From Adineta vaga (taxonomy: Eukaryota; Animalia; Rotifera), in assembly GCA_021613535.1 (NCBI GenBank), contig CP075494.1, positions 6,138,001 through 6,202,000 on the forward strand: a stretch of DNA of 64,000 bases. The letters are read 5' to 3'. Numbering within the stretch: position 1 is the stretch's first letter; every line of letters begins with the position of its first letter. Of this stretch, positions 21,503 through 55,367 are shown piece after piece. The notes below the pieces were generated by a model, which was given only the letters and a program-made list of their open reading frames with translations, had not been told where the DNA came from and searched no databases. Made by a program: the position numbers and the translations under genes.

Positions 21503-23632
21503 CTAGTCCATAAATCGATCATCGTCGTAATTCAAATGAATACACGGAGCAGAAGATAGTCCTATTTCATAGATTAAATGTATCTTAAATTTGAGTCGTT
21601 GAAATTTAAGCCACTCTGAGAGTGCAATCTGATCTATTCCATTCCAACGAACATCCACTTTCTGCAATGCCTATATGAGAAAAGAAAAAGCATTTCTTGT
21701 AACATACTGAAAATAATCGTTTTCCCACCTTATTCTTTTCCATTCCATGAATCAAATGTATAGCTCCTACATTTCCAATTTTATTCCAAGATAGATCAAG
21801 TAGTATTAATGTCTAGCAAAATAATACATATGAGAATAGAATAATTATCAAATTAAAAAATACATTCTCTTTACCGAATTTAATTCCAATGCGTCACATA
21901 AGTATTGTGTTCCAGTGGCTTCAATATTATTCCAACTCAGATCCAAATGGATGAGTGTCTAGATACATCGAACGAGAAATGATTATTCGTTCAGTCTCAG
22001 ACATCGAAATACTTTATTTGTTTTCAGTGCAGTTGCAAGACTCTGTGTTCCTTCGTCTCCGAGTTTATTCTCAGCAAGATTGAGAATAGTAAGTGTCTAG
22101 ATGTAAAACGGAATTCAAATGCGAATCAAACTGATAGAGCACCTTACAAACCTTATTCAATTGCAACATCGATATGAGATGTTGCGCTCCATCAGATCCT
22201 ATCCTATTTCCCGAGAGATTGAGATGAGTGAGTGTCTATGATTGAGAATATAACTCTATGTAGATTTTCATCGAAAAAAATACTCGTGTTACTTGATTGT
22301 ATATGAGAGCTATGGAAAGCCTTTTTATTCCTGACGGTCCAATATTATTGAAAGACAGATCAAGTGTTTTTAATGCCTGAGATGAAAAGATAAACATAGA
22401 ATTCGAAGTAGTAATGACTATACTTTTATTACCGTATTCTTTTGTATACCTATTGCTAGTCGAGATGTTCCGTAATCAGCGAGATTATTGTGAGCGAGAT
22501 TAATGACAGTTAGTGTCTATAGATAAGAAACAAATATTCATTATATTCAATAATATCAAAAAGATATTTTCATTGTACCTTGTTGTGTTGTAGTGTTTGA
22601 CCTAGATATTGTCCTGTATATAGAGAGAGTTTATTTCTTGTCATATTAAGTTGTTTAAGTGTCTATGGAAAACGTTCAATAGTGATTATTATGATTCAAT
22701 CAAAGAAATACTATCTCTACCATATTTGTTTTTAAAGAATAGATTAAATCAAATAATGCCTCATTTCCAAGATCATTCGACGAGATGTTAAGTATAGTAA
22801 GTGTCTGTATCAGATGAAAATTGAAAAGTTGATGTTATTCAATGTTCATTGAAGACCGAGAACATGATAACAAATATTTTTTTGAATGTGCAATAAACTA
22901 CAAAGATACAATCGACGGCGAGTCATCTAACTACTAATAATCAAAATTATTTAGAAAAAAATCACATAACGAATAATAGAGATTAATACATATTATGGCG
23001 CATCTAGCTGACTGCATATATTATAAACTATTCAGTAAACAGTTATCTTACTCTTGTATTGTTTGCTAAACAACAGGACAGAGTTTCTAGATCTTTTTCA
23101 TTCAAATCTTTTGAATGTAGATCTAATTCTTCTTCTTCTTCTTCTTCTTCTTCTTCATGGTATTTAGTAGTTTCTTTCATGCTCCAATTCCGTTGATTCG
23201 ATAATACTGATGTTGCATTATAAAAATTTATGTCTAAACAGTAAAGTAATCATAACAAAAGCTGTCCGATATGGTTAAGAATTATTGAAAATCATAGTTA
23301 CCATACTCTTCCAGAATGCTCTGCACATTTTGACCCATCAAATAAGAAAACAGAAAAGCAGTACTTTCAAAAAAGCTGCCTATGTCTTGTGACAGAGGAT
23401 ATGGTGATGAATTGTTTGAAATCTTGTTACTTTTTATTGATGAATATGATTGTCTATGTTTTGTATAATGTTCATAACATAAACCATTTTTCCACATTGA
23501 ATCTCTACATTTAGAAACAGAACATGATGCCAATGGTTTCTTTCGATAACCAGAAGTTTTTCTAGTATCTAGTGGTGCACTATGTGCCTGTAATCGTTTA
23601 TATTTTCTTCTCGATGAGAATGATGAAGACAT
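21503..23632 (-). CDS. Zinc-finger + LRR protein, paralog B (11 coding exons, eight of 84 nt)
   Basis: Exon 1 contains CSVSKCRDSMWKNGLCYEH and exon 2 contains poly-Glu. The 84-nt LRR exons run from 22805 to 21729. TAG at 21505-21503. Confidence 0.85.
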
Positions 23633-52109: not shown

Positions 52110-52997
52110 AAGTGTTCACCTCTATGAGGTTTCATTTTTAATTTTTTTTTGTATATAAAAATTCTGTGGTGCTGTGTTTTTAATCAATATATATATATAT
52201 ATATGCATCGTTTTTCTGTTTGTTTGATTTTCGAAACACGATGAGAAATAAAGGGGGAAAAAAACTTTTGCATTCTCGTCACATATCATTGATGATTCCA
52301 TTAAGAGGTGATACTTTAAACATATGTGACATTTGCCTTTTATTTCAAACCAAGGTACTACTAACTATCTTGTCACTTTCAATGATAAACTTGCTTCTTG
52401 TCGAGTAAGAAAAATACACTCTGTTATTCATTCGCAATCAATAGAAATACAATGTGTTTTTGTGCTTGAATAACATCGATAATATCATCATCATCATCAT
52501 CATCATCAACAACAAGGATACAAACATCTCTTGACACCAGCTGTGCTATCAGCTCAATAGGCGACCTCCTCCTCCTCCTATCTCGCCTACGATGATAGTT
52601 TTTTTTCATTGCGCATAAGAATAAAAGCCATGGACTGTATATACATATTCTTTTTTTTTCTCAAAAGATAATAATCGCGTTCATTTAATAGCAAATATTT
52701 ATCTTCGATGTCGCCATACTGACTGATTATGTTCTTACATTTCGATTAGAATATATTTCCGATCCTCTATTATTTGAGTCTTTCTTATTAGAGTTAGCGT
52801 TGAGGAAATGCATTAATATCTTGAAAATCATCAAATCAAAACCGCATCCAATCAAATTGTGGGAGAAGAAAAAAAAGCCGAAAGGAAAACACTCGCTACA
52901 TAAGTAGCGACGTCATCGTCGTTTACAATCATTATTTTACTAAACTATCAGATCAATTGGCCTTGAAAAAGTAATGTTTATATCGAATTTTTTTTAG

Positions 52998-54380
52998 ATG
53001 ACACAAGCAAATGCTGGTGGATCAGCTAAAGATGCAGCCGATCAAAATTTCGATTATATGTTTAAATTACTTATTATTGGAAATTCGTCTGTAGGAAAAA
53101 CATCATTTGTATGTTGTTGATTTGTTTATTGTTTTTTTTCGAAGTAAAAATGCACGTTTTTTTTTCTTTTGATTTTTCAAGCTTTTCCGATATGCAGATG
53201 ATTCTTTTACATCAGCATTTGTTAGTACTGTTGGAATTGATTTTAAGGTTAAAACTGTATTTCGACATGACAAACGTGTTAAATTACAAATATGGGATAC
53301 AGCTGGGCAAGAACGTTATCGAACAATAACAAGTAAATCACTTTCGAAAATATAATAGTTTTATTATTGAATTGATTGGTTTTCTTTTTCTCGTTAGCTG
53401 CGTATTATCGTGGTGCAATGGGTTTTATTCTAATGTATGACATCACTAATGAAGAATCATTTAATGCAGTACAAGATTGGTAAGTTTCATTGATTGAAGA
53501 TGACCTAGTTTAAGATAAATGAAATGAAACAATTTCCTTTGCGTACATTCATATTCTAAATATTAAAAAAAAAGAAATGAAGCAAACAAAATGCACCAAC
53601 ATTCTTTTCAGGTGTACACAAATAAAAATGTATTCATGGGATAATGCACAAGTTGTTCTTGTTGGAAATAAATGCGATTTAGAACAGGATAGAGCTGTTA
53701 CACAAGAACGAGGCAAACGTCTTGCTGATCAATTGGGTAATTGAATTAAATATTGTATCTTGAATGTACGCTTTCGATATGTGTTTCTTTTTTCGGGTTA
53801 ATTCTTTCTCTTTTGCTTCATATATATATATGTATATGTTGTGTTGTATGTGTTGTATTTTTCAAGGGTTCTACAGATAAAGACACATTCATGGGAAAAA
53901 ACCCCGATTATATTGGTTGGAAATAAATGTGATATGGCAAATGAGAAAGTCATTATGACACTAGAAGGAAAAAAACTTGCCGATGATCTCGGTAAGGTTT
54001 TTTCTTTCGGATAAAATTCACTCGAACATAAACAAAAACGAAATTTGTTTATTGAAAAGATGTTTAATGATAACATCAATTTTCGTTTTAGGTTTGGAAT
54101 TCTTTGAAACATCAGCAAAAGAAAATATCAATGTAAAAGCTGTTTTCGAAAGGTAAAGTGCATCAGCTGAAGTCATTTGTTTTCGAGACAAATTTCATAC
54201 TTTTGTTTTAGATTAGTTGATATTATTTTAGAAAAAATGTCGGATGCACCGGAAGATCCAAGTGGTAATAGTGGTCAAGGAAATGCTGCTTATGGTAATC
54301 AAGCAGGTGCCTATAATAAAGGAACGACAAGACTTGCCGCCAATGAACAGCAATCGAAAGGCAATCAATGTCAATGTTAG
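52998..54380 (+). CDS. RAB3: Ras-related protein Rab3 with two alternative homologous internal exons
   Basis: [54 protein letters not shown] and the C-terminal CQC prenylation motif. Confidence 0.95.
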
Positions 54381-55367
54381 GGAACAAATAAACAATAAAT
54401 CTGCCTTTAAAAAAATGAGATGATCGCAATTTTTTCTTATTCCAGTCAATGTTTTCCTTTCTATTTATTTGTCGTTGTTTGTCTTGTAAGAAAACATACA
54501 CATACATACATACATACTAGAAAACAAATAAGATAAAACATATTCTTTTCTTCAATAGATACCATTCCGATTTAAGTTTATTATATGTATATATATATGT
54601 GATGTACCCGTATATCTTTTCCTTGTTTGTTTTCTCTTGTATTCGTGTATTTTTTAGTCTTTTATTTTTTGTCATGTGACCGCTACACCACCTCTCGTTT
54701 CTTTTGGATTGATTCTTTACCTCAATCGTATTTTTTTCTCTCGCCTTTCTTTCTTCTTATGTGCAGTATTTCTGATGAATCACTTTTTCATTTGTGTCAG
54801 ATGAAAAGCTGGTTTATCATTTATCTGATCTATGCGTTTGACTCTTATCCTATTGTTTTTTATTTAATGTTCTAACCAACGTCTACAACATTCATACATA
54901 CATTTCAACAAAAAAAACTTCACCATCAAATTTAGTTCTTTTTTCTTTTGTCAAATTTTCTCTGTCGACAAGATCATCGAACCATTACATAATATTTGAG
55001 CAAAACAATTGAGTTGATCTAATTCAATTGAATAGGAAGGAGAAAAAAAACAAGTCTTTCTTTTGTTATGAAGAGTTTCGCACAAGAAACAATGTTTATT
55101 GTCGATATAATTTTCCGAAGATGTCAAATGATGTGATACAATAAAGTCCTGTCGTATTAGAAAAGAAAAGCTTCTTATCATAATTGAAATTCTTTACAAA
55201 GACTGTCCTCAAATTTCAATTGAACAGAGTATTGACTAAATCTATTATTCACTTAGAAAAGTTTTCTCAACACGTTGTTCTACGGATAAAACTAATCATT
55301 TTCTATTGCATAAAGCATTCCCTAAGGAGATTTTTCTGTTCGAATATAAAACGTTGTTTTGTAGATC

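Follow-up and report, generated by a model that had tools for sequence, protein, structure and literature searches.

Invertebrates are, to our knowledge, usually treated as having one Rab3 protein, a view that follows from the fly and worm models, which have one. The Rab3 gene on the + strand of a 64-kb stretch of Adineta vaga DNA (the window, by which we mean the whole stretch) carries two homologous alternative 125-nt exons, A and B, and raises the question of whether it makes one protein or two, how a choice between the exons would be made and what that choice would change. The original prediction, drawn from this DNA, was that one gene makes a canonical Rab3 and a variant through mutually exclusive exons. 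RNA joins, conservation across 14 loci and purifying selection on B bear this out, and we consider it likely that one Rab3 gene with a tandemly duplicated internal exon places exactly one copy in each productive mRNA to yield Rab3-A or Rab3-B, the best explanation of the whole with the mechanism proposed below included. Two spliced versions of a core vesicle-release GTPase are present here, and what distinguishes them includes a loop linked to the choice of effector. An intronic stem around exon A and the occurrence of the arrangement outside A. vaga go beyond what had been predicted.

Structure of the Rab3 gene

The gene begins with a probable 5′ untranslated exon at 52790–52959 of the window (+ strand, as are all features below), recovered in an RNA contig of run X3 and by blastn to the Rotaria, Adineta steineri and two other A. 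vaga loci (contigs C2 and C4); the contigs list no join from it to e1. Coding exon e1 (52998–53108) carries the start codon and G1 motif and is joined in frame to e2 (53108>53182) in all four RNA runs; e2 (53182–53332), bounded by RNA joins, encodes switch I, G3 and switch II; and e3 (53398–53479) ends in the phase 2 donor that joins to both A and B. Exon A (53612–53736) encodes canonical Rab3 residues 117–157 and exon B (53867–53991) a variant of the same residues. Both are joined to the common phase 1 acceptor of e5 (54092–54152), which is followed by the last exon e6 (54212–54930), assigned from RNA contigs and the reading frame, with its stop at 54378–54380 and a 3′ UTR running to a poly(A) end near 54930. 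The protein ends in CQC, a CXC prenylation motif. It belongs to the Rab3 subfamily: searched with the A-form protein of the C2 copy, solved Rab3 chains score E 1e-95 to 1e-105 and Rab8A 1e-62, exon A of the window is 95% identical in protein to that of this copy, and the G motifs and C-terminal CXC are present. The genome comprises 100.8 Mb in six contigs. Queries for homology searches were single exons, database proteins or a naturally occurring open frame from locus L007; one human protein record (P0019) among the matches was excluded from all analyses.

Exons A and B are adjacent, enter in phase 2, leave in phase 1 and align without gaps at 77 of 125 nucleotides and 18 of 41 amino acids. 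Recomputation reproduced the coordinates, 125-nt lengths, AG/GT borders, phases, stop-free frames and translations first given for the pair. Frame arithmetic likewise confirmed that including both exons or neither shifts the frame: either exon alone gives a protein of 232 aa, A plus B stops after residue 160, and omission of both leads to a stop after residue 119.

Two observations concern the surroundings of the gene. A non-coding block with a CCAAT-like core at 52806–52858, upstream of Rab3, is conserved in the C2 and C4 copies, Rotaria and A. steineri. From 55368 onward on the + strand lies an intron-containing gene that we take to encode a ribonuclease H2 subunit A-like protein; it starts about 440 nt past the Rab3 poly(A) end, and the same linkage is present at loci L042 and L050.

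Splicing of exons A and B in RNA

We aligned RNA contigs from four runs in three studies to the gene; the runs, presumed to be RNA, skip every intron at GT..AG. The e3>B and A>e5 joins are present in all four runs, the B>e5 join is complete in three runs and represented by a matching loose end in the remaining one, and the e3>A join is complete in one run and represented by such an end in two others. Each exon is thus spliced to both common flanking exons, and the four junctions originally proposed as a check (53479>53612, 53479>53867, 53736>54092 and 53991>54092) are all found. Contig depth, which is not an expression measure, is of the same order for A and B in the four runs (A/B 44.9/43.3, 71.8/66.5, 69.9/37.4 and 10/17.4), from which we conclude only that B occurs at more than a trace level. 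The four runs show neither an A>B nor an e3>e5 join at a threshold of 1 in 100, and double inclusion and skipping are therefore absent from mature mRNA to the sensitivity of contigs; since contigs drop rare variants, strict exclusion and decay of frame-shifted forms are not separable in these data. The A–B intron is retained in contigs of two runs at a depth of about 15 and the B–e5 intron in one run, and these contigs are probably part-spliced RNA.

A and B could instead be independent cassettes, with decay alone removing the products that contain both exons or neither, and with the intronic motifs described below acting as protein sites or persisting as relics whose complementarity is incidental. 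The exon length, not divisible by 3, suits this account, as does the early stop of an A>B join, which in 14 of 15 loci falls four codons into B with two introns still to follow, and the rare unstable forms that it calls for would be invisible in contigs. Yet the motifs in the two introns stay complementary across Adineta and Rotaria, with one pair changing jointly, and the A–B intron is seen unspliced at a depth of about 15 while its excision is not. We therefore regard decay acting alone as decidedly unlikely and retain the reading in which exon choice is itself regulated.

Conservation and selection in bdelloids

We compared 14 distinct two-exon bdelloid loci (some counts use 15). Both exons are present in the second A. 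vaga copy (C2), Rotaria socialis, R. magnacalcarata, A. steineri, Didymodactylos carnosus and metagenome loci, and in all 14 loci neither A nor B contains a stop, a frameshift or a change of length. Exon A evolves at an omega of 0.03 (p 4e-38 against an omega of 1), with 33 of 41 residues invariant across the 14 loci. Exon B evolves at an omega of 0.30 (0.16 and 0.48 for the first and second halves, respectively; likelihood-ratio test against an omega of 1, p about 8e-11) and is clearly under purifying selection, the outcome of the comparison with related genomes and dN/dS estimate that had been suggested for B. Its weak AAG acceptor and faster evolution might recall a pseudo-exon or an assembly artefact, an idea to which we give practically no credence: RNA from three studies shows B joined to its neighbours on either side, full-length B-form proteins are found in Rotaria automatic annotations and in independent unannotated contigs, and the RNA joins together with the intact frames in 14 loci refute it.

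The A. vaga genome holds two further copies. The second ancient copy lies on the minus strand of contig C2 at about 13.928 Mb (L007:1263–1624; annotated I4U23_010088), carries both exons, and encodes a protein identical to that of the window at 95% of residues in exon A and 68% in exon B. A third, divergent Rab3-like gene lies on the minus strand of contig C4 at about 9.599 Mb (L003:1159–2139; also L022) and has an intact frame of about 235 codons, with a single exon at this position that groups with B. This gene is without exon A and both arms of the stem described below, its upstream intron is 49 nt, the AAG acceptor is retained, and the gene resembles a single splice form that became fixed after gene duplication.

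In the C2 copy the A–B intron continues the reading frame without a stop, and the NCBI annotation includes, as well as the A form, a 240-aa product that retains this intron (UJR28866.1). In-frame reading from A through the intron into B was rejected as a conserved feature, the frame being open in just 3 of 15 loci and partly by ascertainment.

A conserved predicted stem around exon A

Exon A is enclosed by a perfect 11-nt inverted repeat with its 5′ arm at 53541–53551 in the e3–A intron and its 3′ arm at 53761–53771 in the A–B intron, beginning 25 nt past the donor of A. Across the 64-kb window the 11-mer is found at these two arms only, and the arms pair in both minimum-energy and centroid folds; the folding z-score of the whole region is 0.22 and uninformative, the stem alone being notable. 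The stem core recurs in 12 of 14 loci inside introns that are otherwise poorly alignable, and the best helix between the e3–A and A–B introns beats dinucleotide shuffles in 13 of 15 loci (p ≤ 0.035). Pairing holds in 130 of 132 stem cells (11 positions in each of 12 loci), compared with 18–49% when one arm is slid. One position is U–A in three loci and C–G in nine, which is probably a single double change, and in one locus two Watson–Crick pairs have become G–U. Most pairs are invariant and hence uninformative, so that this double change and isolated flank changes make the covariation modest: the complementarity is conserved and includes compensatory change, weak as covariation evidence.

Two loci depart from this pattern. 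Locus L034 has no stem motif and instead a different 14-bp helix between the e3–A and A–B introns (p 0.035), and Didymodactylos has both exons but no significant helix between these introns (p 0.74). Against dinucleotide shuffles in 15 loci, the other two intron pairs yielded no conserved helix, those between the A–B and B–e5 introns being non-significant in 13 of 15 loci, and a second or competing stem around B was sought in the same loci and none is conserved. Duplication remnants in the introns were likewise looked for, and none rises above shuffles. The e3–A intron (53480–53611) is A-rich and the A–B intron (53737–53866) U/G-rich across loci (mean AT skew +0.24 and −0.46, respectively), a composition that leads folding programs to extend the 11-bp stem into a long imperfect duplex; this extension may be compositional.

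Conserved intronic pairing that loops out one alternative exon is known from the docking site and selectors of Dscam1 and from 14-3-3zeta, Mhc, MRP1, srp and ATE1 exons 7a/7b (PMC6071210). Rab3 differs from the Dscam1 type in having no competing selectors, its 11-mer occurring at two arms only, and from the bidirectional srp type in having a pair around A and none around B; with one stem found only, it is neither a docking-selector nor a bidirectional system as these are defined.

A UG-rich tract, a weak acceptor and a model of exon choice

Ahead of exon B, a UG-rich tract (53837–53856) precedes the AAG acceptor (53864–53866). This acceptor is AAG in 14 of 14 loci compared with 1 of 34 constitutive acceptors of the same Rab3 genes, in line with the weaker acceptor behind a UG-rich tract that had been pointed out at the start. 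The tract agrees at 11 of 12 letters with the UNC-75/CELF element of C. elegans unc-32 intron 7a, making it a putative binding site, and in the 13 loci other than Didymodactylos the agreement is 9–11 of 12 letters and ends 4–24 nt ahead of the B acceptor. In unc-32 the UNC-75 (CELF3-6) element lies between two exclusive exons, 7a and 7b, and selects the upstream one in neurons (PMC3585155). Rotifer Rab3 is alike in placing a UG element, here a candidate site, in the intron between exclusive exons. It differs in that the choice in unc-32 further depends on RBFOX acting at a downstream intronic UGCAUG, and no UGCAUG site occurs in the flanking introns of Rab3 in the window. The sole other exact copy of the UG 11-mer in the window is at 22581–22591.

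We favour, with some reserve, a model in which the stem and a repressor together set the choice of exon. Formation of the stem would loop out A and bring the e3 donor to B; a UG-binding protein of the CELF3-6/UNC-75 kind on the tract before the weak B acceptor would block B, so that A joins e5, most plausibly in neurons; and stray transcripts that contain both exons or neither, with their early stops, would pass to nonsense-mediated decay. The clearing of errors by decay is suggested by the stop that the A>B join meets shortly into B, ahead of further introns. By analogy with unc-32, and given that A is the canonical and nearly invariant version, neurons may use A and other cells B. The C4 paralog speaks for the model, a B-only gene having lost A together with both arms; against it stand the lack of a second stem among 15 loci that would explain skipping of B, the absence of a significant helix in Didymodactylos and the different helix of L034.

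Other routes to exclusion were weighed. A distant branch point near the donor of A, of the tropomyosin/OGDH type, could sterically block the A>B join, leaving the stem to tune the ratio or to protect or define A. Ahead of its acceptor, the strongly U/G-rich A–B intron of the window contains no AG for 128 nt, and the AG-free stretch measures 36–128 nt across the 14 loci, as such a branch point would lead one to expect. The AG-free stretch is, however, just 36–45 nt in three loci, low A content alone lowers AG counts, and the A–B intron extends to 484 nt in Didymodactylos, and we judge this arrangement unlikely beside the stem-and-repressor model. Steric exclusion by a short intron was rejected, the A–B intron (98–134 nt, or 484 in Didymodactylos) being longer than most constitutive Rab3 introns (45–76 nt), and so was U2/U12 incompatibility, all three introns being GT–AG with variable, ordinary donors. 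The exon pair remains compact, and its single conserved stem and single UG element within less than 700 nt make it a test case for exclusive splicing by structure plus repressor.

Consequences for the Rab3 protein

The alternative exon covers residues 117–157, comprising the end of α3, the α3–β5 loop (CDR2), β5 with the G4 motif, and α4. The α3–β5 loop is the second RabCDR, represented in the fly by residues W-D-N 124–126 (PMC4552854), which agrees with its original assignment to the RabCDR. Exon B retains W125 and the G4 motif and changes Y123H, D126E, N127K, A128T, Q129P and much of α4, so that 23 of 41 residues differ between Rab3-A and Rab3-B with the nucleotide-binding motifs unchanged. 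The W-E-K-x-P of exon B is invariant in the 13 non-Didymodactylos loci. The altered effector surface foreseen for the variant therefore holds for the sequence of Adineta/Rotaria-type B and fails for Didymodactylos, the deepest bdelloid branch, whose B has the canonical loop.

Rabphilin contacts the RabCDRs through its SGAWFF motif (PMC9308819), and the genome contains a rabphilin-like gene with SGAWFF (L087:1822–1885, contig C1 at about 2.196 Mb), one of seven FYVE_2 (Rab-binding domain) matches, so that a partner that could discriminate the two forms exists. Judging from these sequences, we lean slightly towards a difference between B and A in binding CDR-dependent effectors such as rabphilin, with the switch regions, encoded in common exons, binding alike. 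In the fly, Rab3 with W-D-N of CDR2 changed to alanines still rescues active-zone organisation (PMC4552854); this rescue and the canonical loop of Didymodactylos B count against a large effect of the loop change. An AlphaFold prediction of a B form, made with a 30-row alignment, reached a pLDDT of 35 and was discarded.

The same facts invite the reading that the splicing switch is real and B nearly redundant, drifting under relaxed constraint with a loop change irrelevant to partners. Its omega is ten times that of A and reaches 0.48 in the second half, the canonical loop is retained in B of Didymodactylos and monogononts, the fly CDR2 is dispensable for one tested function, Brachionus calyciflorus is without A, and Seison is without B. 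Against such redundancy stand the persistence of B in the two ancient gene copies and throughout the two-exon bdelloid loci, the invariant W-E-K-x-P in the 13 loci, B contigs about as deep as those of A, and a separate B-only paralog whose frame is intact. We find near-redundancy doubtful. Either way, the exon pair offers a natural experiment on the role of CDR2, which directed mutation in flies left open.

Age of the exon pair in rotifers

Didymodactylos is sister to the other sequenced bdelloids (PMC7943196), and its possession of both exons with a canonical loop in B shows that the loop change postdates the duplication. Two unannotated proteins, apparently from one species, group with Brachionus on the common exons (support 90/91); they show 13 differences, 12 of them in the alternative exon, where one is A-like and the other B-like. 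Brachionus calyciflorus has a single B-like exon. The Rab3 gene of Seison nebaliae (L041:1501–2226) is intronless and of A type, as expected if a copy of an A-form mRNA had replaced the gene. A tree of the 41 residues groups rotifer A (91/95), rotifer B (91/80) and a mollusc–brachiopod–nemertean variant (87/88), and restriction of the duplication to bdelloids is rejected by a narrow margin (AU p 0.029, 41 columns). On the two-form Brachionus-like proteins, the tree groups and this rejection, the pair probably predates the bdelloid–monogonont split, arising in early rotifer evolution with separate losses afterwards.

Variants of the same segment in other Spiralia

Isoform pairs in RefSeq from Lingula (XP_013381632.1/XP_013381633.1) and Tubulanus (XP_074644075.1/XP_074644076.1) differ within the same 41 residues only, gene models of Batillaria and Nucella place a variant copy in tandem with a canonical one, two kinds of variant occur in Haliotis, and further non-rotifer variants of the segment were also found. 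The RefSeq isoforms are products of automatic annotation, and exon structure in these animals was deduced from the proteins. Database isoforms of snails, abalone, a brachiopod and a ribbon worm thus exchange this segment, and classic animals of synaptic physiology belong to these groups. The variants of Lingula, Tubulanus and Haliotis isoform X2 also have Y123 changed to H. Since basal B has Y, the change to H in the mollusc, brachiopod and nemertean variants and in derived bdelloid B looks convergent. The variant precedes the canonical copy in the gastropod models, whereas in bdelloids the H-variant lies downstream.

No tested arrangement with one or two origins across Spiralia is rejected (AU p 0.19–0.36). 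We raise only tentatively the idea of a single Rab3 exon duplication in an early spiralian as the source of both the rotifer pair and the variants of molluscs, brachiopods and nemerteans, maintained for over 500 million years as a means of switching the effector-specificity loop by splicing. If so, spiralians would diversify Rab3 by exon choice where vertebrates do so by gene duplication (Rab3A–D), and in bdelloids an RNA stem and a CELF-type protein would set the neuronal or non-neuronal form.

Haliotis rufescens X2 (P0155) and Lineus longissimus X3 (P0150) present a third kind of segment, in which, as in rotifer exon A, Y123 follows a methionine. There may be three alternative exons in molluscs and nemerteans; the grouping of this third kind with rotifer A is unsupported (46/82).

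Relation to known Rab exon swaps

RAB6A and RAB37 already provide examples of duplicated alternative exons, and insects and mammals provide examples of exclusive splicing guided by RNA. Between the two Rab6 forms, about three residues close to switch I are changed. Human RAB6A (Rab6A/Rab6A′) is, like rotifer Rab3, a Rab GTPase with a tandemly duplicated, alternatively used internal exon; rotifer Rab3 belongs to another Rab subfamily, and there 23 of 41 residues differ in a segment spanning α3–β5–α4. RAB6A, already cited as a precedent in the original prediction, is listed among conserved repeat-swapping events (10.1101/2023.04.29.538821). In a survey of human exon substitutions, RAB37 is described as an old exon swap by tandem duplication with a Drosophila orthologue, its differing residues forming a surface patch proposed to change partners (PMC8373072); it is a Rab exon swap like that of rotifer Rab3, in a different gene, and the main text of the survey makes no mention of RAB3A–D. 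Searches of the literature in general and for bdelloids, Aplysia, molluscs and lophotrochozoans, with subscription journals mostly outside their scope, gave no description of such Rab3 exons, matching the earlier impression that none had been published, although isoforms from automatic annotation do exist.

A separate kind of variation was seen at the other end of the protein. The last 700 bases of the Brachionus calyciflorus Rab3 locus (L040) hold two alternative last coding exons that begin at the same residue and each encode their own CXC, and monogonont-like transcripts carry both kinds of Rab3 tail.
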